Of a stretch of 64,000 nt of DNA, positions 15,638-40,050 are shown in pieces. Position 1 is the stretch's first letter. Each line of letters starts with the position of its first letter. The stretch spans positions 1,573,492 through 1,637,491 of the forward strand of contig CM074822.1 in NCBI GenBank assembly GCA_037447605.1, written 5' to 3'. The notes beneath the pieces are model-generated. The model was not told the DNA's origin and did no database searches. It saw only the letters and a list, made by a program, of their open reading frames with translations. Position numbers and translations under genes: made by a program. This stretch comes from Zygnema circumcarinatum SAG 698-1b (lineage: Eukaryota > Plantae > Zygnematophyceae).

Positions 15638-15846
15638 TGTTGATGTATGGAGTACATCAAGGTGTTGGTACTTAGTTCCTAGCATGAATGTTGTCCGGGA
15701 GATCAATGTGCTGGTATAGGGACAATGTCATGCATGAATGGTCATGTTTGGCGTAGGACCGAACATGGGGGGTGCCCGTATCATTAGGGCACGGTACGGC
15801 AGGTCTAGGAATAGTCTAGGGTCGTAGGTTTGCGGCTTTGACTTTA
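15638..15846 (+). mobile_element. Family A LTR, 5' part, inserted into the MULE transposase
   Basis: Matches the first ~210 bp of LTR1; runs into an N gap. Confidence 0.85.
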
Positions 15847-18290: not shown

Positions 18291-18751
18291 AATGGCAGAC
18301 CGCCACGTGTTCCTCTCTGACTCGAATGGGTCAGAGGTGTACAACGTACGAATGCTCGCCGCATTCCGCAGCGCGCGCCGCGACGCGGCGCGCCGCCGTA
18401 CGTCGGTGCACGGTCGGATCATACGCGCGCGGCGCGGGGTCCGACTGACAGTCCGTCCGTACCAACGGTAACCCGTAATTGTACGGACGACGGTTACGTT
18501 CCAAAACGTAAGGAAGATGTGGTCGGGATTCCGTGATCCCTCGACCACATCGGCGACGCGATACATATATGTCTCGGTATACCGCGCCGCATCGAACCCT
18601 TGCAACCTTCGCAAGGTTCGATCCCAAGACCCTTCCCGGTCCTAGGTGGTCCCCGACGCCTTGGCCACTCGGCCCGCGCCCGGGGTGAGAGTACTAGGAC
18701 GGAGCGCGCCCTAAGTACAACTCCCGTGGGTGACTGTAGCGTTTCGCTACA
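18291..18751 (-). repeat. Gypsy family C LTR (5' part)
   Basis: Minus strand begins TGTAGCGAAACGCTACAGTCACC; downstream part homologous to 28330-28520. Confidence 0.8.
18610..18685 (-). promoter_or_regulatory. tRNA-like A-box/B-box module in a second Gypsy LTR variant
   Basis: GGGCCGAGTGGCCAAGGCG ... GGTCTTGGGATCGAACC on the minus strand. Confidence 0.55.
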
Positions 18752-18857
18752 CCACCCGTTTCTCCTTGCTCCTCTTGACAGTGAGTACCACTCCTTCCTG
18801 TTTATGGCTGTTCCTGAGATCTTCAATCAACTCCTCCTGCGTAGCGAACTCCATCAT
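18752..18857 (-). pseudogene. N-terminus of the MULE transposase, cut off by the Gypsy insertion
   Basis: Manual translation MMEFATQEELIEDLRNSHKQEGVVLTVKRSKEKRV resembles a FAR1-type N-terminus and lies just inside the TIR. Confidence 0.65.
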
Positions 18858-19098
18858 CTGGTGCGTCGCGCGAACTGCTTGAAGGGGGGGGTTGATGGGG
18901 CAGGGCGGACGCACTCTTTAGGGTTTCGACCTTTTTTTTGTAAAATAAAATTCGCCCGACGGAAAAAGGTGTTGTATCAATTCTAAGAATGTATGAAAAC
19001 GCCATTTTCCGTTATTTGTCCTTTTTTATGTCTGCCCGGCCGGGCAGGGGTGTTTGGATCCAAAAAAGGGGTGGAAATATCACTACCCTAAAAGAAAT

Positions 19099-19397
19099 GG
19101 TAGTGATATTTCCACCCCTTCTTTGGATCCAAACACCCCTTTCCGGCCGGGCAGATTTCAAAAAGGATTAAAAACGGAAAATGCTTTTTTCACACCTTTT
19201 TGAAATCGATACCCACCCTCCATCGGCAGATTTTGTTTTTGCGAAACAAGGAAATAACCCGTCACCCCATTTTCAATATCCCGCCTACCTGGATTTTTTT
19301 TCACGTGTGCGGTCAATCGTAGCCGTCAATTCCCTCGCAGATCGCAACACGGCAGATCACTATTTGCTCTGCAGCCGGGCTCGGTCACAGTGAATGG
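19099..19397 (+). mobile_element. Second, diverged MULE-family terminus next to the first element
   Basis: GGTAGTGATATTTCCACCCC...ACACCTTTT repeats the TIR about 10 bp after the right TIR ends. Confidence 0.7.
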
Positions 19398-19577: not shown

Positions 19578-21496
19578 CCGGGGTAGGTCCCACATAATGC
19601 CGGAGGTAATCCTCCAGGATCCTGTTCACTTGTTCCGTGTGGCCATCGGTTTGCGGGTGGAAAGCTGTACTCAAGGCCTGCTTGGTCCCCACGATTTTGA
19701 GCACTTCCGTCCAGAAATGGCCGGTGAATCGTGGATCACGGTCAGACACAATTTTTGACTGAAGACCATGCTGGCTCCACACTTTGTCAACATACAACCG
19801 TGCAATCTCGTCGGCCCCAGTTGTCTTAGTAGTTGGTGCAAAGTGCACCATCTTGCTGAGCCGATCAACAAAGACAAGGATGGAGTCATGCCCCCTAGGT
19901 GTCACAGGAAGATCTGTGATCAAGTCCATGCCCACACTGTCCCATTTCCGAAAAGGAGGTGTGAGGGGTTGCAGCTGGCCAGGGATCCTGCCAGTGCGGG
20001 GTTTGTTGCGTTGACAAGTTGGACAAGCGAGTACATACGCTTTTACATCCCTCGAGAGTCCAGTTCACCACAACTCTCGGAGTAGTGCCTCACGGGTCTT
20101 GGCAACTCCCATGTGACCTCGGTACGGAGGATCATGTAGCTCACTCAGAATGAGCTGCCGTACAGTCCCGGCCTTGGGCACGACCAACTGCTGGCCGTGG
20201 TACCAGAATCCGCCCTTAGACACCACTTTGTCCTTATAGCCATTACCTTGGCCATCCAAGAACAAAGGATCACCAGCGTACCCAACCTGAATCATCTGTC
20301 TGAGATCNNNNNNNNNNCTTGATCTTTGTCATGCACATCCTCAGTGGCTGTCATGACATGCACCATAAACAAGGTGCAACCCTCCTTTACTGCTTTGGTC
20401 AGTTGCATGGCCGAACAGAGATAAGGGTCATCCAACTGTTTGGTAACAGTGGATGTGGATCTGCCAGGGTGCAAGGTTATGCGCCTGTCACCACTGTGCA
20501 GAATGCAATGTGGGATGGAGAAATCTAGTTGGGCCTTGACCATGGTTATCCAAGCACTCCCCAAAATAACATCAGTTCCAGGGGCCAGCTGTGTCAAAAG
20601 ACACTTGACTGCTCCGGAGTAGGATTGGAGCTTGATCTTGAGTGTGACGATGCCAGAGATATGGCCCTTGCGTCCATCCCCGAAAGTAACACTTTCTGAA
20701 TGGGGATCTGTGGTCAACCCAAATCTCTGGGTGAATGTAGAACTAACAAAATTAGCATCTGCCCCAGTATCTAACAGTATAACTGCTGGGTGGCCATTGG
20801 CTGACCCGGTGAAGGTCATGGCCCGATGGGCAAGATGGAACATAGATCGCACTATATGCGAGGGTTGAGGACAAATCGTCCTCCACACCAAGGTGTAGGG
20901 TGATCTAACCAGCGAACTGGTGGATCCTTCCATCAGTTGCACCATTTGATGCCCTTTCCTCAACTGTTTCACCAACCGCCAAGTAGCGTTGGGAAAGGTG
21001 CGAACTGCCATGTGCTGAGGAACCAGCACATGCAGCCCAAGGATGTGGGATGTGTCCCTCATGACATGCAAAGCATCCATGGAACATTCCACCAAGACAT
21101 CATCGCCCATTACATTGAGGATAAAGACATGCCATTGACCATGCATCACTACACCCATGAATCCAGAAGGAGTCACTACCGTGGCAGGGGAGAGAGAAAT
21201 GGAATCCGGAAGCGCATTACACACAAACAGGTCATGCATTCCAAAAGGTCTGCCCATCAATTTCACAATGTCCAGAGTTTTAAGGAACAACCATTTCCTA
21301 ACCCTGATGGCAGCCATTTCTCCCTTATCCCCTAGCCTATCCTCCCCACCAGCAACGACTCCTAAGCTGCTGGTGGGTTGGGGTTTTCCGGCCCCTTGCC
21401 CTTCCTGTCCTTGGTGTTCAAAGGACAATCACAGGCCTTGTGGCCCTCCTTTCTGCAACGGAAACATTTGTTCTCCCGCTGCATCTTCTCCATCTC
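19578..21496 (-). pseudogene. Ty3/Gypsy fragments: gag end, MTase-like insert, protease, integrase core
   Basis: [11 protein letters not shown] protease; GMDLITDLP, VDRLSKMVHF, SDRDPRF, HPQTDG integrase; gaps. Confidence 0.85.
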
Positions 21497-21506
21497 NNNN
21501 NNNNNN

Positions 21507-21748
21507 TTGGCCAGAGGGTCTGAACCGTACATCCCATCATGTGTTGAAGGAGCTTGAACGCTGCTCGTGAAAACCCTTGAGTGCGCTCGAGGACGAGCCC
21601 GGTTTAGGTGGGGAGGAATGTAGCGAAACGCTATACATGTGTTGTATGGCCTAGTACTTACATCCGCGGTTGCCTTTTAATGGTAAAGCACTGGTGTGGG
21701 TACCGGGAGGTCCTGTGTTCGAACCTTGCCAAGGGCAGGTTTGTTACA
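21507..21748 (+). mobile_element. TRIM copy 2 (internal part, PPT and 130-bp 3' LTR 21619-21748), inserted into a Gypsy C LTR
   Basis: Reverse-complement homolog of 33138-33400; PPT TTAGGTGGGGAGGAA; 5' end lies in a gap. Confidence 0.85.
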
Positions 21749-21860
21749 TCCTAGGTGGTCCCCGGCGCCTTGACCACTCGGCGCGCGCCCGGGGTGAGAG
21801 TACTAGGACGGAGTACGCCCTAAGTACACCTCCCGTGGGTGACTGTAGCGTTTCGCTACA
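21749..21860 (-). repeat. Gypsy family C LTR 5' end, inserted 18 bp into a Copia LTR
   Basis: Nearly identical to 18640-18751; abuts Copia LTR stub 21861-21878 and PPT. Confidence 0.8.
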
Positions 21861-23869
21861 AGCACACTAACACTAACAATCCCCCTCTTGGACTCAGTTT
21901 CTCATGAGCCCTAGCCCAATGAGTCTGCTATTCACTAGTAGTGTCTCCCCGCTAACTCCCTTAGTCAACATATCCGCAGCCTGCTCCTTCGTCCCCACGA
22001 ACTTCACAACAATCATCCCCTCCTCTACCAATTCTCGCACAAAATGATATTGCACTCTGATGTGCTTTGTTCTCTTATGGAACACAGGGTTTTCAACAAG
22101 AGCAATGGACGACTGGTTATCCGTGAACAAAGTCAAAGGACGTTGTGGCCTCTTACACTCATCAAAGAAATGTTGGAACCAAACTCCCTCCTTCAAGGCC
22201 ATGCGACATGCCTCATGTACCGCTTCGCTGTGACAATCTAACCGGTCTGTACTCTTCCGAAGCCCATGAGATCGCCTTCCACTTGCCGTAAACAACCGGA
22301 GTGTCGACGCGATGTGTCCACGCCACCTCCCCAGTCAAAGTCGGTGTATCCACGAATTTGTTCGCCTCGTAACGGAGTCCGCATCTAAGGTCCCCTCGTG
22401 ATGAACCTAAAAGATTCGCTTACTCGGCCCCAAATACCAGTGGCCGGATTCTTATGAACTCACTCGCTGTGCTCACAAATTAAGTCCTGGCCGGGTACCA
22501 ATCATTAGGTACATTAGACTTCCGATAGCAGATCTGTACGGCACTCCGTACATGCGCTGAACCTCCGCGTCCGTCGCGGGCTCCATATCTTTCGACAATC
22601 TCGCGCCGATCTCCATCGGGCTGGTGCACGGTCTCCACTCCTCCATATTGAATCTCGCAAGTAGATCCGCGGCGTACTTCTTTTGACTTAGGAACAGACT
22701 TCCGTCCTGCCCCCTCTTCAGCTGTATCCCCAAGAGATACTGCGCCTCCCTTAGATCCGACATCTGGAAGTTAGCTTGCAAAAGCTTCTTCAGATCATTG
22801 ATTCTCTCAAGTGAGAGACTCACCATAATGAGGTCATCCACGTAGATCCCAACGTGCGCACATGAGATCTCCTCCCTCTTGTCGACGGAATGATCCTCGC
22901 CTCAAAAGCGCCGCAGAACTGCTTTCTCCTAGAAGATCGCCAATCTCGCATTGCATCCCGGTGCTCGCTTCGCCCTCGCGGCATGCATTCTCACTAGGCG
23001 CATGCACGCAGATGCTCCCCGCCCCGGTGACAACTTTCCTTCGCCGCTTCCATGTGATCTCCTCGCCACATCTCCGCATGCAAACGCGTCTTGATATCTC
23101 CTCCAACTCCATGGACATGCATCCCTCAACAAATTAGGGCACTGAGGGAGTTAACTTCACCACCGCAAAAGTCTCCATGTAGTCGATTCCGTACTTCTGG
23201 CTGTATCCCTTTGCCACCAGCCGCGCCTTGTAACGGTCGACACTCCCGTCCGCCTTCCGCTTCACCTTGAACACCCACTTGCATCCAATGGCTCTCCTTC
23301 CCTTCGGCAGCTTCTCCAGTCGCCACGTCCCGTTCTCTATCAGACTATTCCACTCGCTATCGATCGCTGCTCGCCACTTCGCTCCATCGACCCCATCGTG
23401 AGCCTCCTCGAAGGTTTGCGGCTCAGTGATCATGTAGTAGTGGGCAACTCCTGCGAGGTCAGCAGAGTCCGTAGGCACTCTCTCCTGCATCAGGTTAGTC
23501 TGCGACGGCCTGTATCGTTCAGGCCTCCTCACAACACGGGTGCTCCTCTGCGGTCCTTGCGTTCTCCCACTCCTCGAGTTGAAGAAAATTCCGGGAACAA
23601 ATCCCGGAGGCATCCTTGCCCTCATCGCGTCTCTCTCAGCCATCTCCAAGTCCTCAGACTCCTGCCCGTGCAAAGGTACAGTTTCGACCGAGTCTTCCTC
23701 ATCCGACAGGTGAGTGTGTAGTGGGGCCGTCTCCGTCGATTTCTCTGGCTCCCCCGCTTGCGGCTCTTCGGGTTCGACTCCCGCCTCCGCCTCGACGTCC
23801 GGTGTTGCTCTCGAGTCAGCTCCTCCGCTCTCCGGCGTGCTGATCTCCTCCAAAACCGGNNNNNNNNNN

Positions 23870-26800
23870 TTGGATGTACTTCCTTCTTCCATTTCGCTTT
23901 CCCCTGCCACTGTAGTGACTCCTTCTGGACTTATGGATGTGGTGATGCATGGTCAATGGAATGTGTTTATCCTCAATGTTATGGGTAATGATGTCTTGGT
24001 GAATTGTGCCACGAATGCCCTGCATGTCATGCGGGACACATCCCATATACTTGGGCTGCATGTGCTGATTCCTCAGCACTTGGCCGTTCGCACTTTTCCC
24101 AACGCCACTTGGCGGTTGGTGAAACAGTTGAGGAAAGGGCACTCGTTGGTGCAAGAGATGGAAGGATCCACCAGCTTGCTGGTTGGCTCACCCTACACAT
24201 TGGTGTGGAGGACGGCTCGTCCTCAACCCTCGCATATAGTGCGATCTATGTTCCATCTTGCCCATCGTGCCATGACCTTCATCGGGTCAGCCAATGGCCA
24301 CCCAGCAATTATACTGCTAGATACTGGTGCAGATGCTAACTTTGTTAGCTCTGCATTTACCCAGAGATTTCAATTGACCACAGATCCCCATTCAGAAAGT
24401 GTTACTTTCGGGGATGGGCGCAAGGGCCAGATCTCTGGTAGCGTCACACTCAAGATCAAGCTCCAATCCTACTCCGGGGCAGTGAAGTGTCTTCTGACAC
24501 AACTGGCCTCTGGTACAGATGTTATTTTAGGGAGTGCTTGGTTAACCATGGTCAACGCCCAATTGGACTTTTCCATCCCACACTGCATTCTTCGCAGTGG
24601 TGATCGGCGCATCACACTGCACCCTGGTAAACCACCCACCACTGCTACCACGCAGGATGTTACTCCTTATCTCTGCTCGGCCATTCAATTGGCCAAAGCC
24701 GTAAAGGAGGGTTGCACCTTGTTTATGGTGCATGTCATGGCAGCCACTGAAGATGTGCATGTCAAAGATCAGGAATGGCAGATCACACCTACGGATGTGC
24801 TCCCGGCCGTTCCACCAAGGATCCAACCTCTGTTGGATGAATTCAGGGATGTCTTCCCTGATGACCTTCCAAGAGGGTTGCCCCCGTCGAGAGGGGTGGG
24901 GCACACAATCCCTCTTGAGCCTGAACAAAAGCCGCCTTGGCGGCCGATCTATCGGTTAAGCCCGAAAGCAACCGAGGAGATGCGAAAGCAGTTGGCAACT
25001 TTACGTGAAAAGGGCTGGATAGAACCTAGTCAAAGCCCCTTTTGGGCGCCCATCTTGTTTGTTGGGAAGAAAGATGGTTCGTTGAGGATGTGCATTGATT
25101 ATCGCGCCCTCAACAAAATCACCGTAAAGAACCGTTTTGCTTTACCACGTATTGATGATCTGTTGGATCGTCTTCACGGCGCCAAAGTGTTCACATCCCT
25201 TGATCTTGCTCAGGGGTATCATTAGATCCGTGTCACGGAAGCTGATGTGCCAAAAACTGCGTTCCGAACGCCGATTGGTCATTTCCAATATAAGGTGTTG
25301 CCCTTTGGATTGACTAATGCTCCGGCGACTTTCCAGGCTGTGATGAACGAGATGTTCATAGGCATGGATGAGTTTGTTTTGGTTTACCTCGATGATATCC
25401 TTGTCTTCAGTAAGACGGAGGAGGAACATCTTGAACACGTTCGGCAAGTGTTTGAGACCCTGAGGAAACACCAATTTTATGCCAAGAGGAAGAAGTGTCA
25501 CTTCATGCAACGTGAATTGCTATATCTTGGGCATATTCTCAATGCTCAAGGCCTTCCGCCTGACCCTGCCAAAGTTTCAGCGGTAGAAACTTGGGCACCA
25601 CCAACTGACTTGCATTAGTTGAGGTCTTTTCTGGGCTTTGCGAATTATTTTCGTAAATTCATTCAAGGGTTTAGTAAGTTGGTTACTCCCTTGACTAATT
25701 TGACACGTTCCGGTGTCCCCTTTACATGGACCCCTGAATGCCAGGATGCATTCGAAGGTGTGCGCCATGCACTTGTTACCGCACCCACTCTCCGTTTAGC
25801 GGACCCGTCCAAGCCTTATGAAGTGGTTTGTGATGCTTCGGGATTCGCCTTGGGTGCCGTCTTGTTTCAAGATGGTCAACCTCTGGCATATGAAAGTCGC
25901 AAGATGAATCCCGCTGAGCGCAACTATTCTGCAACAGAACAGGAACTGCTTGCAGTGGTCCACGCCCTGAGGACATGGCGGTGCTATTTAGAGGGGGCGA
26001 AAGCGGTCACGCTGGTCACTGACCACCGCCCGCTGACGTTCCTCTCAACCCAACAGACCCTGTCTAGGCGGCAGGCACGCTGGTCTGAGTTCCTCCAAAG
26101 GTTTGACTGCCAGTGGGTCTATCGGCCCGGAAGGCTGAATGTAGCAGACCCACTGAGTAGGCAGCCTCGGCATCTTGCCTGGATGGTGCGCTCGTCGACT
26201 CGAGTGTTGGTGGAACGAGATGACAGAGGTGAGGGGCCGGCCAACCCCGAGTCTCCGTCTCCAGTATGCTTTGTCATAGATCCCTCCACCAGTGACGCAG
26301 TCAACCCTCCTGCTCTCTCTGATCTCAGACAGATGATCCAGGAGGGGTATACTGGTGATCCTTTGTTCCTGGATGGCCAAGGTAATGGCTATAAGGACAA
26401 AGTGGTGTCTAAGGACGGATTTTGGTACCACGGCCAGCAGTTGGTCGTGCCCAAGACCGGGACTGTACGGCAGCTCATTCTGGGTGAGCTACATGATCCT
26501 CCGTACCGAGGTCACATGGGAGTTGCCAAAACCCGTGAGGCATTGCTCCGAGAGTTCTGGTGGCCTGGACTCTCGAGGGATGTGAAAGCGTATGTACTCG
26601 CTTGTCCAACTTGTCAAGGAAACAAACCCCGCACTGGCAGGATCCCTCGCCAGCTGTACCCCCTCACACCTCCTTTTCGGAAATGGGATAGTGTGGGTAT
26701 GGACTTGATCACAGATCTCCCTGTGACACCTCGGGGGCATGACTCCATCCTCGTCTTTGTCGATCGACTCAGCAAGATGGTGCATTTTGCACCAACTACT

Positions 26801-27790
26801 AAGACAGCTGGGGCCGACGAGATTGCACAGTTGTATGTTGACAAAGTGTGGAGCCAGCATGGTCTTAGTCAAAAATTGTGTCTGACCGCGATCCACGATT
26901 CACCGGCCATTTTTGGACGGAAGTGCTCAAAATCGTTGGGACCAAGCAGGCGTTGAGTACAGCTTTCCACCCGCAAACCCGATGGCCCAGGCCAGGCGAA
27001 TTGAATAGGATCTGGGTTACCTCCGGCTTTTATGTGGGACCTACCGGATGGGTGGGGCGAACTGCTCCGATTGGTACATTATGCCATCAATAATGCTTAC
27101 CCGGGGAGTCCATTGAGGTACCACCCCTTTCTTCCTGAACTTTGGTCAGCATCCCCTAAATCCCCTGCAACCAAGGGATCAGTCCCCTGATCCGTGGAAC
27201 ATGGGCGTCCACAGAACCCCCGATCCTTGGAAGCTGAGAGGGACTGATGGGACTCAACCTCCCGCAGTCAGATCTTTTGTCCGGCTAATGTCTGGGGCTC
27301 TGCAGAGGGCACGGCAGACCCTGCTAGCGGCCCAGTCGCGACAAAAGGCCTATGCTGACCGCGGGCGTGCTCACCTCACCTTCGATATTGGCACTGAAGT
27401 GTTGTTGAGTACTGCCAACTTGAAACTCAAAGCTTATGGCGGAACACGTAAGCTGTGGCCCCGTTTCATAGGACCTTTTAAGGTCGTGAAGCGAATCAAT
27501 GCTGTCGCTTACAGGTTGGATTTACCATCCCACATGAAGGTGCATCCGGTCTTTCATGTGGGCTTGCTAAAGGTCTACCGTAGCGATGGGAGGATCCAGC
27601 CACCTCCCCCACCAGTGGAGCTTGAGGGTGAACTTGAGTAAGAAGTTGAAACCATTCAAGCCCGTATTAATGAAAAGGGTCGATCTTCCGTCCACGAATA
27701 CCTGCGTGGAAGTGGTTGGGCTATGGGGTTGAGCATAGCACATGGGAAACTGAGGGCAACCTGACCAACTGCCAAGAGCTCATCAACTTG
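23870..27790 (+). pseudogene. Ty3/Gypsy chromovirus pol (MTase-like insert, PR, RT, RH, INT, chromodomain)
   Basis: [37 protein letters not shown]...CPTC, GPFKV; premature stops at ~25223, ~25616 and ~27639. Confidence 0.9.
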
Positions 27791-28002
27791 TACTGGGAGG
27801 CGCAGGCCGCAAGAGAGCGGGCGAGGGCGGCTCGGGGGGTTTCTGAGCCGTCCCGCGCAACTCGGAAAGGGACTTGACCGGGATTATCGCTGAGCCCTCC
27901 CGGTTATCACGTAGAGTTCGACGCGTGCCGTTGAAACTACGAGCTGCCTTTACTACCCCACACGTGAACGAGGGCGTTCACATTCTCACAGGGGGGGAGT
28001 AA

Positions 28003-28742
28003 TGTAGCGAAACGCTACAGTCACCCCAAGGGGGAAGGGTTACTTAGAGCCCGGCGTGGCTTTATGTTTCCATCCAATGCAGTACCTAACGGTTAGGGCA
28101 TCGGATACCCTATAGGACGACGGAGGTCCTAGGTTCGAACCGTAAGGCTGGTTCACCGTGGGGTACCGCGGCTCTCTATGGGCCCCGCGTCGTGACCCAA
28201 GGTCCCTCCTCTCGGCGTAGGGGAGGGGGATCAGGGGCCAGCAGCACCGCGGGACCAATCGGTCACCGATTGGATCTCGGGCAGCGGATCCCCTTTGGAA
28301 TTCCCGTTAGATCGTGCAATAGCGGTTTACCCGTTACTCTGGGCCGGGCTGGCTTGTCGGACCCAGCGCCGCGCGCAGAGTTCCGACGTGCACTTCAGCG
28401 TCACGGCGGCGCGCGTTCGCGGCGCCCGCCCAGCGGAAGTCACCGAGGCGTTAGATGCGTTGTACACCTGCGACCCATGCGGGTCGAGAGAGGAGGAACC
28501 TGCGATGGCGGTACGCCACTGGACGGCCCTGCTTCCATCCTCCCGTAACAGTAGGAGGTTCAGCGGGGGAAGCGTAAAGGGGCGAGGGGGACTGTGGTCA
28601 CCCAACGAACGTACCGGCATTCGGTTGCACCCCTGCCCAGGGCTGCGCCTCCCTCTGAAGCTCTCACTCTCCCTCTCTCTCTTTGCTGAACTCTGAAGTG
28701 CAATTCCGCGCAGACTGAGGAGGCGTTTTCTCAGTTGTTACA
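28003..28742 (+). repeat. Gypsy family C 3' LTR (740 bp)
   Basis: PPT AGGGGGGGAGTAA, then TGTAGCGAAACGCTACA...TTGTTACA; Copia sequence resumes at 28743. Confidence 0.85.
28078..28142 (+). promoter_or_regulatory. tRNA-like Pol III A-box/B-box module in the Gypsy LTR
   Basis: GTACCTAACGGTTAGGGC ... GGAGGTCCTAGGTTCGAACC. Confidence 0.6.
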
Positions 28743-31700
28743 TGAGAGGCTTCAATGCCTTCTTCGCTGGTCTCCGTCCTCGCCACAATCTCAATCCGCC
28801 TTTGGGGCTGGGTCTCACCCTAGCCGTGTCACGCCCTTTCGTCCACGTGATGTCCCTGAGCTCTGCACTTCCTTTGCTCGCGGGTTCCAAATCCACCCTG
28901 TAGATGCGACTATCAATGTTATGTAGAACATACCCTTCTAGCGGCTCTGGCGGGTCGAACTTCATATACGTACCTGCCCAGCCCGACTTGCGTCGACCAG
29001 CAGCGCTCGAAAACGGTGGGAAACCGTGGGTTTTCTCCCACTCCACACCTCCTCAGGAACCTGGTCCTTGAGCACAGAAGATGGGCATCTATTCCTAAGG
29101 TAGGCTGCGGTCATCACCGCCTCTCCCCAGAAAGAAGCCGGGAAGGGGGAATCTATCAGCATGGTCGCGCCATGTCCCCCAACGTCCTATTTACCCTTTC
29201 AGCAGCTCCATTACGAGTAGGGAGCAGAAAATTCATGCCTAATTCCACAAGTCTTGAGGTACTCGCCGAACTCCTTTGACTTGAACTCCCCTCTGTTTTC
29301 TGAGCGCAGAGTCTTCAGTTTCTGTCCGCTCTCTCGCTCCATCTGAGTCTGCCAATCTCTGAAGGCTCCGAAAGCCTCAGACTTGTTCTTGAGAATTTTC
29401 ACCCAAATTTTTCTCGAAAAATCATCCAAGAAAAGTGATGATGAAGTACGAGCTCCTCCACTTTCGTTGCGGTGTCACGGGGCCTGAGTCGGTGTGAACC
29501 AACTCCAGTTTCACCTGCGCATGGTACGCCTCCTCTCCGCTCCTCGCGAATGGTTTCCGATGCGCCTTCCCCTCTACACACTCCTTGCAAAAGCCGAGCT
29601 CCTTCTCCACGACATCTACGTCTAACCCACGGACCAGCCCCTTAGCGACAAGCTGTTCTGACCCACGATGGTTTAAGATGTCCCGGAAGTCGATGCTAGA
29701 GATTTGCTTGAGTTTCAGCGCAGCCATCACATCTTCATCCTCTGTCCTTCTATAATGAAGATAATACAGGCCTCCCTTCTCATACCCCTCAAACAGCCGC
29801 TTCCCCGTCACTGCATGAGTAGCTACACAAGACTTCTCCTTGAATGTGATCTCGTACCCCCTCTTACACACCTGGCTAACAGACATGAAGTTTTGTTTCA
29901 GCTCGGGGGTGTGAAGGACATCACCGATACATAGACGCTCCTCCCTCTATTCTTTGTAGATGACAGAGCCGTCTCCGAGAATCATCTTGACTACTCCTCC
30001 TTCGTGACTATCACTCCCTCTCCGGTTGGCGAGTGAACAGATCGGGTCCTCTCCAGCGTGTCCAGCGTGGAGAACATCTGCTTGTCGCCACACATGTGTG
30101 TGGAAGCGCCTGAGTCGATCAACAACGGCCGCTTCAGATCCTGAACCTGGATCTTCCCAACAAAGTCAGAATTTTCAGGCCTTTCAGACATCATCAGATT
30201 GGTCTCATTCGACCCTCTGCACTCTGTGCTCTTGTGACCTCGCTTCTTGCACTTGAAGCAGANNNNNNNNNNAGTGGCCGGTCTTGCCACACGTGTAGCA
30301 CGCTCCTGCAGGGCGTTCTCCTCGGTCCGACTTCGGCGCACCTCCTCTTCGGTCTTGTCGTGAGTGTAGCGCTAGCACCTTCTCCTCGGTGCTCCCGGTG
30401 TCTTGGACGGTGTCCTCCTCCTTGATCCTCCGCTTCACTTGCTCAAGGGTCATTTTCGAGTTCGTTAGGACAGTCCTAAGCGCTGCGACTGCTACATCAA
30501 ATCTGGAGGTCAATCCCCCTAAGAATAGGCTGACCTTATGGTCACTCTCTAACGGTTTTTGTAGAGCTATGAACCTCTCCATCAAGGTATCAAACCTGAC
30601 CATATATTCACTCAGTTTCTCATCCGAGGACATTTTCATCTTCCCAAGTTGCGTGTAAAGACTCACTATCGTAACGTTATCCTTTACATCATACATCTCT
30701 TCTAAGCACCTCTACATAGCATGTGAGGTCTTGAGATCATACAGCATGGACGAAGGACTTCCCCTCACACTCATGACGATCTGGGTGAGCGCTTTGTTGT
30801 CCTTGGCACTCCATCTGGCGAGCGCCACTTCGTGTTCCGACTGCTGCTCCGCCGTGGCTCCCTCCGGTAGCACCAATTCCTTGATGGTGCCGTTGACGTA
30901 CCCCAACAGTCCCTTGCCCACGAGCAAAGGGACCAGCCGCCATCTCCACCCCTTGTAGTCTTGACCGTCGAATGCGGGAATGCTGAACTTCACNNNNNNN
31001 NNNGATCCGTGTGAGTCTACGAGGATCCGACGGCGCAGGATTAGGATCGGGATAGGGCCCTTGCAGGCCGCTAGTCGATGTTGTGAAGCTTCGTAGCATG
31101 TTGTTATCACGTGTGTAGTGACATAGTATTTAAGGATTGTTTTTGTTGTAGGCAAACAATTCATTCAGGCTGTTGTAGTCTCTGTTATGCTGTTCGCTCG
31201 TGTTGCGACACTACACTTACTCGTGTTGTGAGGTAGTGAGCTGTGAGATTGCTGAGCGGTCGATTTGAGATGGGGTCTCTCAATGTATGAGTGAATTCAC
31301 TATTAAGGAGTTTTAGAGCCAGGAGCTTTCTCCTATTCATTTCTCTCTGTTATTCCGTTGTGCATTGTTTGCTGTGATTCACTTTGTGTGTAAAATGGGC
31401 TATGAGTGAATGTGAGGGATTTGAGTATGTCATCGTCGATTGGAACGCGAACTCCGATGGAGGGTGACCCGAATGGAGGAACTGACGGCAGCAGTGGAGG
31501 AGTCCCTGCACCAACAAGTGGTATCAGAGCTCATGGAGACTCGGAGGACCATGTCAAGTTCAGCATTCCGGCCTTTGATGGGCAGGATTACAAGGCATGG
31601 AGATGGAGGTTGGTTCCCTTTGACTGGCGGGCACTAGGTATGTTGATGGCGGCATCAAGGCGCGGAGTTACGGTTGGAACCTCGCGCCGGGCGTGAGTGA

Positions 31701-33137
31701 ACACGATATGGCGCTGCGCCGCGATGGAAAGCCAGGAAAACAAACTACTGGCCGCTGATTGTAATGGCGTAAAGAGAGGGAAGTCCGTCCTACATCAGCA
31801 TATGATTTGAAAACCTCTCATGCCATGTGGAGATGCCTACAGGAAATGTATGATGTAAAAGACAATGTGACGATCGTCAGTCTTTACACGCAGCTAGGCA
31901 AGATGAAGATGACTTCAGATGAGAAACTAGAAGCTTANNNNNNNNNNCCAGCACATCACAGAGTGAAGGAGCCGAGCCAGCAGCTGCGTCAAGCGAGCCT
32001 GCTGATGTTGGAGAGTCGCCAGAAGACGCGCATGCGGAGGAGCCGCAGAATTCGACGGAGACGATCCCACTGCACTCTCAGTCCAGTGGAGAAGAGGAGA
32101 ACTCCGTGGAGACGGTGCCGCTGCACACGCAAGAGTCTTAGGACCTTGAAGCGGCCGAGAAAGAGGCAATGTTAGCAAACATGCCTCCAGGTTTTGTACT
32201 CGGACTCTACTTCTATCCGAGAGGACGAAGCGCGAAGGAGGTTTGGAAGAGCAGTCGGGACAAGAGGCGACCAGATCGGTATACGCCTGAGAACAACCTT
32301 ATCCAAGAGAGAGTGCCTTCAGATTCAGCTGACCTTGTGGGAGTTGCCCATTGCTTTATGATCACGGAACCACAGACCTTTGAGGAAGCGCACGACGGAG
32401 TCGATGACGACAAATGGCGGGTGGCGATCGATAGCGAGTGGGACAGCTTGATAGAGAACGGCACGTGGAGGTTGGAGAAGCTGCCTCAAGGGAGGCGAGC
32501 TATTGGCTGCAAATGGGTCTTCAAAGTCAAGAGGAAGGCAGACGGAAGCGTGGACAGATACAACGCGTGGCTAGTGGCGAAGGGATACGCCCAGAAGTAT
32601 GGAGTTGACTACGTGGAGACTTTCGCTCCAGTGGTAAAGTTCAACTCCTTGAGAGCCTTGATTTCCATCGTAGCGGCTGAAGGAATGCATGTCCATCAGC
32701 TGGACATCAAGACGGCATTCCTGTACGGAGATCTAACGGAAGATATCTACATGGAGCAGCCCGAGGGGAAGGTGGTCCCAGGAAAGGAACACCTAGTCTG
32801 TCGATTAGTGAAGAGCCTATATGGTTTGAAGCAGGCGCCTAGAGTGTGGTACGAGAAGATAGATGATCTTCTGAGGAGGAATGGCTTCAACCGATTCGAA
32901 ACGGATCATTCCGTGTACCGTCAAGGAGAGGGGGCGGACATCATGTTTGTCGGGATCTATGTTGACGATCTCATAATGTATCTGCTTGGGATGCAGCTGA
33001 AGAGGGGGCAGGATGGCACCTTATTCTTGTGTCAGAAGAAGTATGCATCGGATGTCCTTGCCCGGTTCCACATGGAGGGTTCTAGGCCGTGCTCTAGCCC
33101 GATGGAGATAGGCGCTAGATTGTCAAAGGAGATGTCA

Positions 33138-33582
33138 TGTAACGAACCTGCCTGCAGCAGGGTTCGAACTCAGGACCTCCCGGTATTCACCTAAGTGCTT
33201 TACCATTAAAAGGCAACCGCGGATGTAAGTACTCGGCCATACAACCCATGTATAGCGTTTCGCTACATTCCTCCCCACCTAAACCGGGCTCGTCCTCGAG
33301 CGCAGTCAAGGTTTTTCACGAGCAGCGTTCAAGCTCTTTCAACACATGAAGGTGGCGTACGGTTCAGACCCTCTGGTCAACCGTACCATGCTCAGAGATC
33401 ACGGTGTTTTTAGGGTGGATTGCAAATACCAGTCCTTAGGCTCTGATACCAATGTAACGAACCTGCCTGCAGCAGGGTTCGAACTCAGGACCTCCCGGTA
33501 TTCACCTAAGTGCTTTACCATTAAAAGGCAACCGCGGATGTAAGTACTCGGCCATACAACCCATGTATAGCGTTTCGCTACA
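33138..33582 (-). mobile_element. Complete 445-bp TRIM with tRNA-like LTRs
   Basis: Identical 130-bp LTRs (33138-33267 and 33453-33582), iMet PBS, PPT, 185-bp non-coding interior, 5-bp TSD TGTCA; inserted in Copia RT. Confidence 0.95.
33155..33220 (-). promoter_or_regulatory. tRNA-like Pol III module in the TRIM LTR (repeated at 33470-33535 and 21666-21730)
   Basis: GCGGTTGCCTTTTAATGGTAAAGCA...GGGAGGTCCTGAGTTCGAACCC. Confidence 0.7.
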
Positions 33583-34305
33583 TGTCACCTTTGAGTGCAG
33601 CAGAGGCGCAGAAGATGTTCGGAGTGCCTTACAAGTCTGCAATTGGGAGTCTTATGTACCTGATGATTGGAGCAGCGTCAGGACACAGCAAAGCGATTCT
33701 TCGGCGGCGTTCGCGGAGAATCCAGCACCGAGCGTGGGGGCGTGAAGAGGATGACCGGTGTAGAGAGGGGCGCCTTGATTATGGGATGAGGAGTATGAGG
33801 AGGGGCCGGCGCGGGGGTGATTGGCTATCTGAGACTCGGTGGGGTGGTGATGTAGATACATCGCGCTCGACTCCAGGTTTCATTTACCTGTATGGAGGTG
33901 GAGCGATTTCGTGGAGCTCCAAGTTGCAGGACTCGGTAGCGTTATCGAGTACATGAGGCGAGTACATGGGTGCTTGTCATGCTGCAAAGGAGGGCGTGTG
34001 GTTTCAACAGTTCTTTGATGAATGCAAGAGAGAACAACGCCCAATTACCTTGTTCACCAATAATCAAGCATCGATTGCCTTGGTGGGAAACCCGGTGTTT
34101 CACAAGCAGACCAAGCACATCCGAGTGCAGTACCACTATGTACGGGAGTTGGTCGAGGAGGGTTTGATCGATGTGAAGTTCGTAAGCACGAAGGAGCAAG
34201 CCGCCGATATGCTGACGAAAGGAGTTAGCGGAGAAACCCTGCTGGTGAATGGCAGGTTGGTTGGGTTGGGGCCCATGCAAAAACTAAAGTCCCAAAGAGG
34301 GGGAT

Positions 34306-35288
34306 TGTTAGTGTATAGTAGTTAGTCACTAGACAAGTTGTTGTTAGGACATTAGTTTTGTGTGTGTGTTCTATGTGGCCCTTTGGGAGAGCAAATGCTA
34401 CACCTGAGCCGCGGCGGAGGGTGCAAAGCTTTGGTCGGTCGAGCGCGACGCGCGACGGTGGGAGTGACAAGGCGCGAATGCGACAAATCAAAATTAATGT
34501 GACGAACAGAAGGAATGAAGTGTGACGTGACACACGGAGCTCCAGCACGGATTCGGAGCTGATGCAACGTTCAGGCTTTAATGAGCGAGTCGGACTTGAC
34601 GCGATGCGGCGTCAAATTGTCGGCGCGCGATTCAGAACCATACGGAGCTGCGTCGAATTGTCGGTGGCGTGAGACGACGCGAGGATTGATGCGTCATATA
34701 TCTTGAAGGCGGGGTCAGATCCTACGGCGCAAGACGTGGATCGGATGGAAGGCTGAGTCGGATCTGACGGAAGCAAAGGGCTGGATCCGTGTGAGTCTAC
34801 GAGGATCCGACGGCGCAGGATTAGGATTGGGATAGGGCCCTTGCAGGCCGCTAGTCGATGTTGTTAGCTCCGTAGCATGTTGTTGTCACGTGTGTAGTGA
34901 CATAGTACTTAAGGATTAGCTTTTGTTATGTGGGGTAACAATTCATTCAGGCTGTAGTAGTCTCTGTTATGCTGATCGCTCGTGTTGCGACGCTACACTT
35001 ACTCGTGCTGTGAGGTAGTGAGCTGTGAGATTACTTGGGTGGCCGATTTGAGAGGGGGTCTCTCAATGTTGTGAGTGAATTCATTATTAAGGAGTTTTAG
35101 AGCCAGGAGCTTTCTCCTATTCATTTCTCTCTGTTATTCCGCTGTGCATTGTTTGCTGTGTTTGCTGTGGGCTATGAGTGAATGTGAGGGATTTGAATAT
35201 GTCATCGTCGATTGGAACGCAAACTCCGATGGAGGGTGACCCGAATGGAGGAACTGACGGCAACAATAGAGGAGTCCCTGCACCAACA
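34306..35288 (+). repeat. Copia family B 3' LTR
   Basis: Follows PPT AAAGAGGGGGAT; 3' half matches 31004-31516. Confidence 0.85.
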
Positions 35289-35490
35289 TTGCGAAGGGCT
35301 GCGTCTCGAGCAACGACGCCTTCGTGGTGCGCAGCAGGGGATAATATGGCACTGCGGTGCGGATCAGCCAATACAACGTCCCCAACAGCCATACCGAAAT
35401 GCGTACCTAGCCAATGCTGAATTCGCCTGACTGGCTTACGAAATTGATTTAGCGATAGTCAAGGTCTGACTCCCTATAATTCCAAGATTT

Positions 35491-37104
35491 TGTTGATGTA
35501 TTGGGTACATCAAGGTGTTGGTACTTAGTTCCTAGCATGAATGTTGTCCGGGAGATCAATGTGCTGGTATAGGGACAATGTCATGCATGAACGGTCATGT
35601 TTGGTGTAGGACCGAACATGGGGGGTGCCCGTATCATTAGGGCACTGTACGGCAGGTCTAGGAATAGTCTAGGGTCGTAGGTTTGCGGCTTTGACTTAGA
35701 TCGAACCAAAGGGGGTGCGCGGAGTGCGCTTGGACGGATTGGAGCGCGGCCGTACGGACGGCGCGCGAATTGTACGGACGACGCGGAAGTTTGCGGACGC
35801 GGAGATTTGGAAGCGCGGGAGGCGGATTTGCGTGAAGCGACATGATTGGTCGCGACAGCACGCAAAACGCGGCGCATCTCTGAGCGTGACGTGACGCAGG
35901 GTTCGGCAATGTCGGTGGAGAACTTGTGAGATATTTGGAGTGCGCTGATTGGTTGCAGCGCGAGTGTGGAGTACGGAGCGCAAAGCGGCTGAGTGCGCCG
36001 CGAGTGCGCGGAGTACTGACGAGCGATTCTGATTGGTCGCGGCGCGAGCGCGAAACGCGGAGGGAGAAGTTGCGGCGCGGAAACGACAAGGGAATGTCGG
36101 CGGCGAATCGAGACGCGCCATGTGGACCACTCGCGGAGTGGGTTCGCTGGCTCGAGTGTACGGCAGAATGGTCGGCGGGCGAAGAATGCTACTGAGGGCT
36201 GGCGAAGCGGCGGAACTGTACGGATGGACAAGAACTAGGTCGGTGCCATCGTAGGTTTACGAGGCGCACTAGCTGGTCGCTAATTCTGAGTGCGCCCACT
36301 CAGCGGAATGCAAGGGCCGGTCCGTGACGTGACAATTGTGTCACGTCACATCGCCATGGTTGCTTAAGAGAGAGCAAGCTTGGCTCTCTCACTACTCAAA
36401 CTCACTAACTCAAGCTCAACTCTCTCTGAATGTAATGCTGCTCTGTCGTTGGTTGTTTAGGAAGAGCAAGCAGAGGTTGAGGCGTAGAGGAGTCCGGCCT
36501 TGTGTATGAAGGTCGTGAAGGAACTAGCTCTCATCATGCTAAGCTTTAGTGAAGAAGTTAGATGATGTGTCCCTCATGTGTTGAGGTAGAGGAGGAGTTC
36601 ATGGAGGCAGTAAGTGCTTGGCTACTGCAGTCGGGGTGTAGGCTATCAGAGAATAGGATAGCGCTCATGTGAGGAGGAGAATCTAGCATAAGGGATTATG
36701 TAGATTTCCTCAAAGAGCTTGTATTACACTCTTGAAGTTTAAGGAGTTTTATGGCCGTGGGCTTTCTCCTTATTACTGCATCATTTGTCATGTGAGTCCT
36801 CGTGTTGGATTGACGTGGTGGATGAGTGGAGGCAGCCATTGTATGGGCGGTGTGTTGCTCCACACGAGGAGATCATTGGAGGAGCGTGGACTTGAGGAGC
36901 CGAGACCATGGAGGAGTTGAAGTGTTCTTGTAGGTGACGCGTTTAGTTTTCCGCTGTGCGCACCTGGCAAGGGGTGGATGGAAGGCAGTTTGTGGAGGAA
37001 GCGGTATGTGGCCCAAGTGGAAGATGAAGAAAGTTTTGAGCTTCATCCGGGCATGTATTTATCCCTTCCTTGAAGTCTGCTCTCGGGCCCTCCTTGCACC
37101 AACA
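35491..37104 (+). mobile_element. Family A solo LTR
   Basis: Full 1614-bp LTR flanked by 5-bp TSD GATTT; no PBS. Confidence 0.92.
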
Positions 37105-37354
37105 GATTTTAGTCCAATTTTGGCCAAAACCATGCTGAAAATATTAGGGGGTGGTACTGTATATTAGGATGTACGGAGATTTTTCCATTGTAATACAACC
37201 GTACTAGGACTTATAGTAGACCCCCCCAATATTTTCGCCCTGACTTTGCCAAAAACCACTTTTTTGTACGGTAAGTCTGTGTTAGCCGTACTAGCCGTAC
37301 AGACCGTTTTAGCCGTACTCCACTAGCCTTATGAACTTACTGTACAGCAACTAC

Positions 37355-38196
37355 CAGGGTTCGTCAAATAGTGGATTTCGGCTTAAGATAAGGGACTGTC
37401 CCCTAAATTGGTTTTGTAAAAACGCGTAAATATGGACTTTACGAACAAAACCGTACACGTACGGACGAGACAGGAATACAGGAAGACAGGAATTGTTTGG
37501 GAGAAAGACGAGTTTCGAAAGAGGTTGACAGACTTTTCATTGGAAGGCATTCTTCATTGCAAACAGTTTGATAGTTTGACCGCTCTTCGAGGGTCTCTTT
37601 GAGTAGTTTGCATCACTTCTATAGCTGTCTTGTTCAGCCTAACACTTCTAAGGGAGTGGGAACATTTTTCATTTCATTTCTAATTTTAGTTCCTATTTCA
37701 GTTTTTTTTTTGTGACTACACCTAGAATTTCAGAGGTTATGATTTGGAATAGAGTTTTTGTAAGGAAATTTCAAGACTATGATGGATTCTAAAGTGGTAC
37801 TTGGAGTAATTAATGATGGAAGGAAAAGGAAATAGAGAGCTTAGGATTGTATTTACAAAGTTTTTGAGCAATTGGGTTTTTGAATAAGCAACTATATGTT
37901 GTGATTGCCAAATGCACAGTTGTTCTAATTGATTGGTAAAATTTACCAATCTATAAGAGTCGAAGAGGTTGCACCAGTTTCTAAAGCCGTGTTGTAATAC
38001 CAACAAGTAAAGTTCATGTACATCATTGTTATCGTGGTTGCAAATGCAATTCATTTCCTTTTTGTTTTTAACCAAAAAAATGCTTTTTTGGGGCTTGTGT
38101 GGTATTTAAGTTGAAATCACGTAAACTAATCTCAAAATCTTACATAAATAAGCTATTTACGATATTTAGGGGATCTCCCCTATTTGACGAACCCTG
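37355..38196. mobile_element. hAT-type non-autonomous element
   Basis: 17-bp TIR CAGGGTTCGTCAAATAG and perfect 8-bp TSD GCAACTAC. Confidence 0.85.
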
Positions 38197-38213
38197 GCAA
38201 CTACTGTACAGTA

Positions 38214-38346
38214 GGGGGTGTCAGACTTAACGAAATCTTACGAACAAAAAAGTTTTGTAAGTACTCCGCCGCGCCAGGATTGCGATGTCACCGAAGTACT
38301 CGTTCTGGTCTCAAACTTACGAACAATTTTTAAGTCTGACACCCCC
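38214..38346. mobile_element. MITE, same family as 114-270
   Basis: Same TIRs, TA flanks. Confidence 0.8.
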
Positions 38347-39129
38347 TAGTAGCCGTATTGACCGTACTGTACAAGCCTTCAGATCCGCCCTAGCCGTATT
38401 AGCCTTACTGTACTAAAAATACTAGCCGTACTAGCTGCACTAGCAGTTACGGGCTCAACGACTTCTTCTCGCACGGGCCGCCGTCAGAGGCGCTCGCTCC
38501 TCTTCTCTTCTTCTTGGCTTCGATACGGTAAGATACGATACGATACGTACGGGCAAACATTAACTCTAACCTAATACCGCCCGCCTAATGTTAACACGGA
38601 CATCCTTATATTTTCGCCCAATATTTGCCGAAACCATGGCGAAAATAATGGGGGGGTCTACTGTACTTCGACTAAGTACAGTATTGATGAGTAATCGTTC
38701 CCATGACAGGTTACTCGTTCTGAAAATGTATCTTGGCGTAGCTCTGACGGATTCTTGAAACTGGCGCGCCATAGAACAGACAACTGCCATTTGTCAAATG
38801 TGCCTTACCGTACTGTCCGGAGAACACGTAAACACCCTCCCCCGGCGCAGCGACAGCCCGCCACGTGCCTTCCCCACAAACGACATTAAAGTTCGTACAG
38901 CGACGTATTAAACTCCCTCTACGTCACTTCGAACTGTATCCGCAGTCCAACTGTCCAACTATGATTCGTACAATACTGACGTCACGTGAAGCTGGCTAGG
39001 TCCGCTTCGAATATAAAAAGTCAAGACCAGAATCCGCAAGAAAACAAAAGAACGCAAAGCGACAAATGGAGGTCCGCGGGGAGGGCACGGCGTCCCCCCC
39101 GACCAAAGCCCAGGGACACGTGCACCCCT

Positions 39130-40050
39130 TGGCAAGGGAGGGAGGGAGGGAGCGAGGGAGGGAGGGAGGGAGGGAGCGAGGGAGAGAGGGAGGGAGGGAG
39201 CGAGGGAGAGAGGGAGGGAGGGAGCGAGGGAGGGAGGGAGGGAGGGAGGGAGGGGAGGGAACGAGGGAGGGAGGGAACGAGGGAGGGAACGAGGGAGGGA
39301 GGGAGGGAGCGAGGGAGGGAGGGAGGGAGGGAGGGAGTAAGAGGGAGGGAAGGTGGCGAAGTGGTTAGCCAGTTAGGCAGACGCTTGTGAGCGAGGGAGA
39401 GCTGGTTAGTCAGTCAGTCGAGTTCAGAGACGAGGGCGAGGGAGCGCAATGGGCCGGCGATGGGTCGGATGGGCCGCGCTCGTCCTCCTCGTTGTAGGAT
39501 GCTGCGAAGCGGAAGGTGAGGGGAGGGGAGGACAGGAAGGGCGAGAGGGGGATGGGGGAAGGGGAGGGGGGGAGGCAGGGGGAATGGAGGGAGGGCTGGA
39601 GGGCAGGGAAGGGGGGAGGGGAGGGGAGGGGGAGGGGAGGGGAGGGGAGGGGGAGAGGGAGGGAGGGAGGAGGGAGGGAGGGAGGAGGGAGGGAACGAGG
39701 AGGGAGGGAGGGAGGGAGGGAGGGAGGGAGGGAGGGAGGAGCGAGGAGGGAGGGAGGGAGGGAGGGAGGGAGGGAGGGAGGGAGCGAGGGAGGGAGGGAG
39801 GGAGGGAGGGAGGGAGGGAGGGAGCGAGGGAGGGAGGGAGGAGCGAGGAGGGAGGGAGGGAGGGAGGGAGGGAGGGGAGGGAACGAGGGAGGGAGGGGAG
39901 GGAACGAGGAGGGAGGGAACGAGGAGGGAGGGAGGAGGGAGCGAGGGAGGGAGGAGGGAGGGGAGGGAACGAGGGAGGGAACGAGGAGGGAGGGGAGGGA
40001 ACGAGGGAGGGAGGGAGAGGGGTGGAGGGGGAAGGAGAAGGGAAGGGGAA
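39130..40050. repeat. GGGA/GAGG tracts in the leader and first intron of the lectin gene
   Basis: Low-complexity purine tracts either side of the signal-peptide exon. Confidence 0.8.

Follow-up and report, generated by a model that had tools for sequence, protein, structure and literature searches.

Why should a non-coding retrotransposon of only 445 bp begin its long terminal repeats (LTRs) with the very bases that open the LTRs of a retrotransposon encoding its own polymerase, and carry behind them the same kind of tRNA-like segment? We will address this question in a stretch of 64,000 nucleotides (contig CM074822.1 of assembly GCA_037447605.1, positions 1,573,492 to 1,637,491 of the forward strand), which we call the window and to which all coordinates refer. 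It holds three copies of one Ty3/Gypsy family, together with a complete and a fragmentary copy of a terminal-repeat retrotransposon in miniature (TRIM). A sequence-only reading of this DNA had proposed that the Gypsy integrase mobilises the TRIM and that the coding element itself has a tRNA-derived promoter in U3. The explanation that we lean towards, on balance, joins three things: a tRNA-derived LTR domain common to both elements, a TRIM that depends on the Gypsy chromovirus, and a TFIIIC/RNA polymerase III (Pol III)-type block within that domain.

The elements and their LTRs

The Gypsy copies are found between 15.8 and 28.7 kb and form two subfamilies, G1 and G2, the latter with a further copy, G2b. 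In the copy on the plus strand, Pfam recognises protease, reverse transcriptase (RT), RNase H, integrase zinc finger, Tf2-type SH3 domain and chromodomain in that order, and the chromodomain is found in the G1 and G2 copies, so that we can consider them as chromoviruses. The closest relatives of their pol reach at most 56% identity in a representative search, next to one Closterium match with 62% over 41% of the query, and the relatives that bear a name come from green algae (Closterium, Tetradesmus, Volvox and Symbiochloris). The readable parts of the three copies are the following.

28003-28742, plus strand: 3' LTR of G1, 740 bp, with the shared 15-mer at its start, GTTACA at its end (28737-28742) and the polypurine tract directly upstream
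28073-28157, plus strand: putative tRNA-derived module of G1, at about LTR positions 71-155, with the box-B/T-arm block at 28125-28141
27990-28002, plus strand: polypurine tract of the G1 copy, identical to the TRIM tract at 11 of 13 bases and at the same distance from the LTR
23870-27989, plus strand: internal region of G1, with partial gag, protease, RT, RNase H, integrase and chromodomain, its 5' part lost in an assembly gap
18291-18751, minus strand: 5' LTR of G2, 461 bp readable up to a 10-N gap
18601-18679, minus strand: putative tRNA-derived module of G2, with a D-arm 17-mer of class II (Leu/Ser type), the box-B block at 18615-18631 and, behind it, a 13-bp hairpin
15857-18280, minus strand: internal region of G2, fragmentary, with one frame change, two in-frame stops, one N gap and a chromodomain
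21750-21860, minus strand: first 111 bp of the 5' LTR of G2b, 95% identical to G2 and cut within the module by a TRIM insertion
19578-21496, minus strand: internal region of G2b, fragmentary, with one frame change, one in-frame stop and one N gap, the RT portion being absent

Only one LTR is visible per Gypsy copy, the partner LTRs being lost in gaps of 10 N, and the LTR at 28003-28742 is the single one readable through to an end. Where it stops on the 3' side is judged from the terminal inverted repeat and from the match to the TRIM end, the second G1 LTR not being in the window. These gaps are part of a wider pattern: the window contains 17 runs of exactly 10 N, 9 of which fall between 12 and 32 kb, where the pieces have been put in order by stitching short contigs together. 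The window is a draft eukaryotic scaffold. The LTR starts discussed below lie in the following gap-free stretches.

23870-30262: stretch holding the LTR of G1
18291-19397: stretch holding the LTR of G2
21507-23859: stretch holding the LTR start of G2b and the TRIM fragment
31948-41609: stretch holding the complete TRIM

The TRIM is represented by these features.

33138-33582, minus strand: complete TRIM of 445 bp, made of a 5' LTR (33453-33582), an internal domain (33268-33452) and a 3' LTR (33138-33267)
33463-33561, minus strand: putative tRNA-derived module in the 5' LTR of the complete TRIM, at LTR positions 22-120, with the 3' LTR copy at 33148-33246
33583-33587, with its partner at 33133-33137, minus strand: 5-bp target-site duplication TGACA flanking the complete TRIM
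21507-21748, plus strand: TRIM fragment comprising part of the internal domain and the 3' LTR (21619-21748), the remainder lost in a gap

With two 130-bp LTRs that are 100% identical and an interior of 185 bp, the complete copy has the size (below 1 kb) and the structure that define a TRIM, and the identity of its LTRs suggests that it was inserted recently. The other defining features of these elements are all present as well: the primer-binding site (PBS), TGGTATCAGAGCC, begins one base past the 5' LTR, the polypurine tract ends at the 3' LTR, and the target-site duplication falls in the usual range of 4-6 bp. The fragment is 89-91% identical to the complete copy and is inserted in the G2b LTR.

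Both TRIM insertions of the window are located in other retroelements: the complete copy lies within the RT region of a Copia element, and the insertion point of the fragment (21749/21750) falls within the module of the G2b LTR itself. This insertion specifies what the sequence-only reading had described as an interrupted LTR at 21860. The same reading had taken the other two Gypsy LTRs as uninterrupted; for the LTR starting at 18751 this is true only over the first 461 bp, up to the gap.

One LTR domain in a chromovirus and in a TRIM

The resemblance of the LTRs begins at their first base. The 15-mer TGTAGCGAAACGCTA has six exact matches in the window, against 0.03 expected and with none of 100 shuffles giving such a result, and even when two mismatches are allowed no further match appears. 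All six are LTR starts, three of them Gypsy (28003 on the plus strand, 18751 and 21860 on the minus strand) and three TRIM (21619 on the plus strand, 33267 and 33582 on the minus strand), and among the three Gypsy LTRs the identity extends over the first 24 nucleotides. At the other end, the G1 LTR and both TRIM LTRs finish with GTTACA. The shared start and the shared end had both been announced by the sequence-only reading, and we can confirm them, as we can the inner motifs that it listed: TACTTA stands at LTR positions 35-44 of each of the three LTR types, the strings that it called A-box are present (28081-28098 in G1, around 18656-18672 and 21767-21782 in G2 and G2b), and so are the B-box strings GGTTCGAACC and GGATCGAACC and the AACC..GGTT hairpin.

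The homology is not limited to these short motifs. The 17-nt block GGTCYTNRGWTCGAACC has five matches with at most two mismatches against 0.29 expected, all of them in these LTRs, and once the first 17 nucleotides are removed the TRIM LTR still shares a block of 18/20 with G1 (z 6.5) and one of 25/30 with G2 (z 6.1). In a MAFFT alignment, the first ~165 bp of G1 and G2 are matched collinearly by the whole 130-bp TRIM LTR with an identity of 57-62%, which is the level at which G1 and G2 resemble each other in the same alignment (62%). Of the 175 columns that compare G1, G2 and the two TRIM variants, 53 are invariant, with two near-invariant islands, the terminus (16/17) and the block around GGTTCGAACC (13/17), any other window of 17 columns having at most 7; this four-sequence alignment is unreliable in the hairpin regions. 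The same series of hairpins, two or three in the same order, is found in all three LTR types with different stem sequences, and the TRIM LTR ends just past the hairpin that comes after the block. Deeper in the LTR, G1 and G2 are still homologous, although very diverged. The counterpart of the TRIM LTR is only the 5' fifth of the LTR of its Gypsy partner.

We are therefore highly confident that the Gypsy LTR start (~140-165 bp) and the whole TRIM LTR go back to a single LTR domain, of which they are diverged copies. The equation of the TRIM LTR with the first ~130 bp of the Gypsy LTR has to be softened accordingly, from identity to homology. Two outcomes that would have spoken against a common domain did not occur. 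Since every one of the three Gypsy LTR starts, across two diverged subfamilies, carries the module, it is not a one-off insertion of a short interspersed nuclear element (SINE). No other family in the window matches the TRIM termini better either, the sole other LTR family readable there, that of the Copia element, having different termini.

Two observations can be placed beside these results. The Gypsy LTR start TGTAGCGAAACGCTACA (28003-28019) is by itself a perfect hairpin of 7 bp whose loop is AAA, and of which the TRIM has a shorter version. In two distant chromovirus relatives from outside the window, with 50-55% protein identity, a G-rich polypurine tract is directly followed by an LTR that begins TGTAAC or TGTAGC (positions 5560-5603 of the sequence L001 and 6970-7374 of the sequence L003); the tRNA-like block is absent from the LTR of L003.

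The module and its resemblance to tRNA

What, then, is the segment that lies behind the terminus? In a scan of prokaryotic genomes, a 19-mer that the TRIM has in common with G1, GGAGGTCCTNNGTTCGAAC, fell at positions 43-61 of tRNAs called by ARAGORN in about 70% of the first 60 loci, a region that reaches from the end of the anticodon stem through the variable loop into the T-stem and T-loop. The D-arm 17-mer of G2, GCCGAGTGGNNAAGGCG, corresponds in about 21 of 30 loci (viral contigs) to positions 10-26 of tRNA-Ser or tRNA-Leu.

We also compared the modules with an unselected set of 275 distinct tRNAs without the GGAGGTCCTNNGTTCGAAC or GCCGAGTGGNNAAGGCG motif, taken from 230 fetched loci. The four natural modules reach z scores of 4.6-6.5 (mean of the ten best scores), those of the TRIM lying at 6.4-6.5, and none of 60 dinucleotide shuffles attains these values. 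Ten control segments obtain z scores from -0.4 to 2.7 against the same set: three of them come from the Copia LTR and two from a 4.7-kb repeat unit, while the others are G1 LTR sequence outside the module, the TRIM interior and the modules in reverse complement. The alignments follow the tRNA over most of its length: LTR positions 73-151 of G2 align to positions 1-81 of tRNA-Leu (the six best matches of G2 are all tRNA-Leu), LTR positions 84-155 of G1 to tRNA positions 12-74, and LTR positions 50-119 of the TRIM to tRNA positions 2-71. When 1,896 windows of 130 nt were scanned over both strands, the top eight were the LTR modules in sense orientation, and G2b came tenth.

Position matches, shuffles, controls and window scan thus all support the tRNA derivation that had been suggested for the Gypsy LTR module. 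The module very probably descends from a tRNA or from the head of a tRNA-derived SINE and has since decayed, and its donor was probably of class II, Leu/Ser-type, either as tRNA or as SINE head. It is not a tRNA gene, as it forms no cloverleaf of the kind that tRNA finders recognise. With its threshold lowered by 10%, ARAGORN recovers both full TRIM LTRs as a 98-nt class II-like fold, and with a lowering of 25% it finds a 74-nt fold at TRIM LTR positions 46-119; at such relaxed thresholds it reports the TRIM LTRs only, before noise sets in. The fetched tRNAs also served to build two covariance models, by which the modules are among the best matches of the window (7.9-12.3 bits), but unrelated control loci score equally, and we discount this evidence for that reason.

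Elsewhere in the window, a perfect 15-nt T-arm-like stem-loop at 23769-23783 (plus strand), in Copia-like coding DNA, is the best local match to the class I tRNA model; we take it as a product of chance.

A proposed role for each part of the domain

The LTR domain would have two constrained parts, a terminus of 15-24 bp and a decayed tRNA-derived segment. The terminus may serve as the end that the integrase recognises. Within the segment, the variable-loop/T-arm block, which includes box B, appears to be kept almost as strictly as the terminus. Box B is the part of a tRNA gene that is read by TFIIIC, and since the 17-nt block includes it, a TFIIIC/Pol III-type role is the simplest reason for the conservation of this block. 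In the TRIM the block would be the best promoter candidate. In the coding element it is more likely to be a TFIIIC-binding site (boundary or enhancer) or another regulatory site of U3 than the promoter of the genomic RNA. For its part, the TRIM would be copied and inserted by the RT and the integrase of the chromovirus.

These steps deserve different degrees of belief. Judging from the motifs, we find any TFIIIC or Pol III role of the module conceivable and somewhat doubtful. A more specific version, in which the chromovirus keeps a TFIIIC/Pol III-type module under selection and the TRIM arose through shrinkage of an LTR down to the module and the integrase ends, can only be put forward tentatively.

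The box elements themselves are unevenly preserved. At the place of box B we find AGTTC or TGTTC in the TRIM copies, GGTTC in G1 and GGATC in G2. For box A, G2 has 10 of 11 bases at a workable distance from box B; in the TRIM, TGGCC at LTR positions 28-32 is not followed by YGG, and a second D-arm-like stretch offers ATGG without TRGCY.

Several results weigh against the proposed account, and we gather them here. On the tRNA side, ARAGORN finds no tRNA gene in the window at its default settings, Rfam gives no tRNA match at its gathering score or at E values up to 10 (over 16 kb and three stretches of 200-520 nt), and our own covariance models score at noise level. No cloverleaf appears in the folds, and the TTCGAA core is in the stem of a conserved hairpin rather than in a loop. 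On the promoter side, the consensus strings of box A and box B occur at chance level in the window (28 where 25 are expected for box A, 32 where 36 are expected for box B), the patterns serving solely as a chance control, and significance has therefore to come from the longer shared blocks and from the comparison with real tRNAs. Moreover, box A is not conserved among the three LTR types, being poor in G1 and in the TRIM. The sole TTTT of the TRIM LTR lies within the module (positions 57-60), where it would stop Pol III early unless read through, and no T-run follows the module; in three published LTRs of the Helenus group, described below, TTTT comes after the tRNA-like part. As for the partnership, the TRIM interior has no similarity to the Gypsy interior apart from the polypurine tract, the Gypsy PBS is hidden by assembly gaps, and the PBS of the Copia element, TGGTATCAGAGC, has the same core as that of the TRIM. 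None of the three Gypsy copies is intact, G1 having two frame changes and four in-frame stops relative to the full-length relative P0128, even if part of these breaks may be errors of the draft assembly. The sample, finally, consists of three Gypsy and three TRIM LTR copies in one window rich in gaps, and two metagenome scans and one viral scan of public collections for further copies of the family gave none or chance matches.

Alternatives to the proposed account

The main rival is a purely structural role. The module would then be a tRNA relic without any function for Pol III or TFIIIC, acting in cis as a structure, beside the polypurine tract and the LTR end, that is needed for the priming of the plus strand, for strand transfer, for packaging or for the binding of integrase, and the TRIM would keep this structure to offer the same cis signals to the proteins of its helper. 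The block is no more than 140 nt away from the polypurine tract, in agreement with such a role, and so is the recurrence of two or three hairpins in a fixed order with different stem sequences; the G2 hairpin after the block is strong (z -4.1). The stem position of the TTCGAA core instead of a T-loop, the lack of conservation of box A and the TTTT inside the TRIM module also speak for it. Against it stands the identity of the best-kept 17 nt, whose counterpart in real tRNAs is the variable loop with the T-arm, box B included, and our literature search gave no known role for a structure at this place of an LTR. We thus consider the structural role rather unlikely, while ranking it as the first competitor.

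A second alternative concerns the helper. The Copia element that hosts the complete TRIM has the following location.

31004-35293, plus strand: Copia element whose LTRs, each of about 518 bp, are 91% identical, the first one cut by an N gap, and with the TRIM inserted in its RT region

The TRIM could be moved by this Copia family, and the LTR start that it has in common with the chromovirus would be a leftover of ancestry or recombination. The same PBS core in both elements speaks for it, as do the location of a complete TRIM within this very Copia and the target duplications of 5 bp, which fit Copia too. The PBS is that of initiator methionine tRNA, which is widespread among LTR elements, and a shared PBS therefore discriminates little between helpers. 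In fungi, Helenus elements have been assigned to Copia helpers (PMC10886601). Against these points, the Copia LTR starts with TGGATCC and ends with CCAACA, unlike the TRIM, while 15/15 and 6/6 terminal bases and 11/13 bases of the polypurine tract, in register, are common to the TRIM and the chromovirus. Since LTR ends and polypurine tract are what has been kept, we infer that the TRIM depends on the chromovirus family. From these matching ends we hold the chromovirus to be the probable helper, and a Copia helper improbable.

A third possibility is a recent template switch between co-packaged RNAs, which would have grafted the start of the TRIM LTR onto the Gypsy LTRs, or the reverse, so that the shared start would be a chimera. 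Termini that are identical over 15-24 nt next to a diverged remainder are what such an event would leave. However, outside the terminus the TRIM has 57-62% identity to either Gypsy type, just as the Gypsy types have to one another, which implies that any exchange between TRIM and Gypsy is old, and the module is present in both Gypsy subfamilies. We find this scenario highly improbable.

Could the module be a working Pol III promoter that makes the genomic RNA of the coding element? This was the strongest form of the promoter idea, and the conserved box B and the 10/11 box A of G2 at a workable distance are in its favour. Yet the sense strand of the Gypsy internal region contains 16 runs of T4 or more, through which Pol III could hardly make the genomic RNA, G1 and G2 each have a T-run downstream of the module in the LTR itself, and a transcript of about 5 kb would be required; processivity is also the ground on which Kojima argues that autonomous partners must use Pol II (PMC10886601). 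We give very little credence to this version. As Pol III is implausible for the genomic RNA, the block in the coding element is better seen as a U3 site or as a structural cis element.

That the whole resemblance is a product of chance or of the draft assembly, for which one could invoke the 17 N runs, the chance-level box strings and the noise-level covariance scores, is barely credible, given that each of the four separate gap-free stretches (4/4) carries the 15-mer with the module and that the shuffle, control and whole-window tests single out the modules on the sense strand only.

Relation to known elements

TRIMs with tRNA-derived sequence in their LTRs have been described under the name of Helenus and grouped with Cassandra and Ajax as TRIMp3 (Kojima 2024, PMC10886601). 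They are known from fungi and animals and, among plants, only from Selaginella, and their criteria include a conserved box A (TRGCY...YGG) and box B (GGTTC) (PMC10886601). The TRIM described here contains tRNA-derived sequence in its LTRs, as far as our comparisons indicate, and fits a Helenus-type (TRIMp3-like) non-autonomous element, so that the TRIM side of the system is already known. Like Helenus, it is short and non-coding, with a PBS, a polypurine tract and a 5-bp target duplication, its LTR is mostly decayed tRNA-derived sequence in which the box-B region appears to be kept, and a similar 'ggaggtcc.gggttc.a' block, along with similar D-arm strings, can be read in the Helenus LTRs that the supplement prints. 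Unlike Helenus, its TTTT lies within the module and its box A is weak. The Selaginella Helenus has an LTR of 120 bp and an interior of 85 bp, and its termini differ from those of our TRIM.

The main difference is on the coding side: here a pol-encoding chromovirus has a homologous module together with the same LTR terminus. For TRIMp3 the autonomous partners are mostly unknown, and their origin has been explained by a SINE inserting into the LTR of a TRIM (PMC10886601). The LTRs of a Helenus and of its Copia partner are not similar, and long LTR sharing between TRIMp3 and autonomous partners was judged unlikely, as the partners must use Pol II for its processivity (PMC10886601). The same author notes that 'not a few' LTRs in Repbase resemble part of a tRNA, in an analysis limited to TRIMs below 1 kb (PMC10886601). 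We found no description in the literature of a pol-encoding element that shares a tRNA-derived module with its TRIM. The novelty that the sequence-only reading had claimed must thus be narrowed: tRNA-derived TRIM LTRs were already published as Helenus (PMC10886601), and what appears undescribed is the coding partner that shares the module.

Other known systems resemble this one in part. Cassandra also has TRIM LTRs with a sequence that originates from a gene for a small RNA and that there is a Pol III promoter, but its insert derives from 5S rRNA, of which the Rfam scans gave no match; no autonomous partner of Cassandra is known (PMC10886601). In pairs of a coding element with a TRIM or a large retrotransposon derivative (LARD), shared LTR ends and polypurine tract are a sign of trans-dependence (PMC10886601, section 4.2), and this is what the TRIM and the Gypsy family have in common here, unlike those pairs with a shared part that is tRNA-derived and limited to the 5' fifth of the partner LTR. 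TRNA-derived SINEs (SINE2) have likewise decayed, keeping the features of box B and losing the cloverleaf. Unlike them, the module is fixed at one LTR position, has neither a tail of the long interspersed nuclear element (LINE) type nor an A-tail, and moves, if at all, within an LTR element; all five copies of the 17-nt block (5/5) lie within LTRs, so that it does not qualify as a SINE.

Other features of the window

Away from these elements, the window has the following features, several of them repetitive.

1-12000: about 2.5 head-to-tail repeats of a unit of about 4.73 kb, to which belong a partial copy at 35490-36930, 25 kb away, and a 207-bp piece at 15638-15844; region 352-600 of the unit contains GGTACTTAG and GATCGAACC and has a weak tRNA similarity (z 2.7)
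14987-15706, minus strand: open reading frame (ORF) with a Mutator-like element (MULE) transposase domain
19030-19158: near-perfect hairpin of about 125 nt, resembling a miniature inverted-repeat transposable element (MITE), with related copies at 12920-13095 and 18920-19212; it matches many microRNA-precursor models of Rfam, all well below their gathering scores
42242-43126: ORF with an F5/8 type C domain
48253-49023: ORF with a legume-lectin domain, separated from the preceding one by proline-rich PPSPP-type repeats; for the ORFs of this lectin region (42242-49023), no close relative was found in the protein collection
39100-40030, 53900-56530 and 62370-62920: long purine- or pyrimidine-skewed arrays of GGGA/CCCT type with strong GC skew

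What the shared domain would mean

If the proposed account is true, a coding Gypsy family can be named as the partner of TRIMs whose LTRs derive from small RNAs, the class of Cassandra, Helenus and Ajax, and it would be the first autonomous partner identified that shares the small-RNA-derived LTR module. This would contradict the expectation that such TRIMs do not share LTRs with their partners (PMC10886601). It would also open a second route for their origin beside the insertion of a SINE into a TRIM LTR, namely the reduction of an autonomous LTR to a TRIM of Pol III type. If the host is a green alga, as its nearest protein relatives suggest, the TRIM would be the second Helenus example on the side of Viridiplantae. 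Finally, large LTR elements would then spread tRNA-like sites that possibly bind TFIIIC, which is relevant to both the prediction of tRNA genes and the annotation of chromatin.

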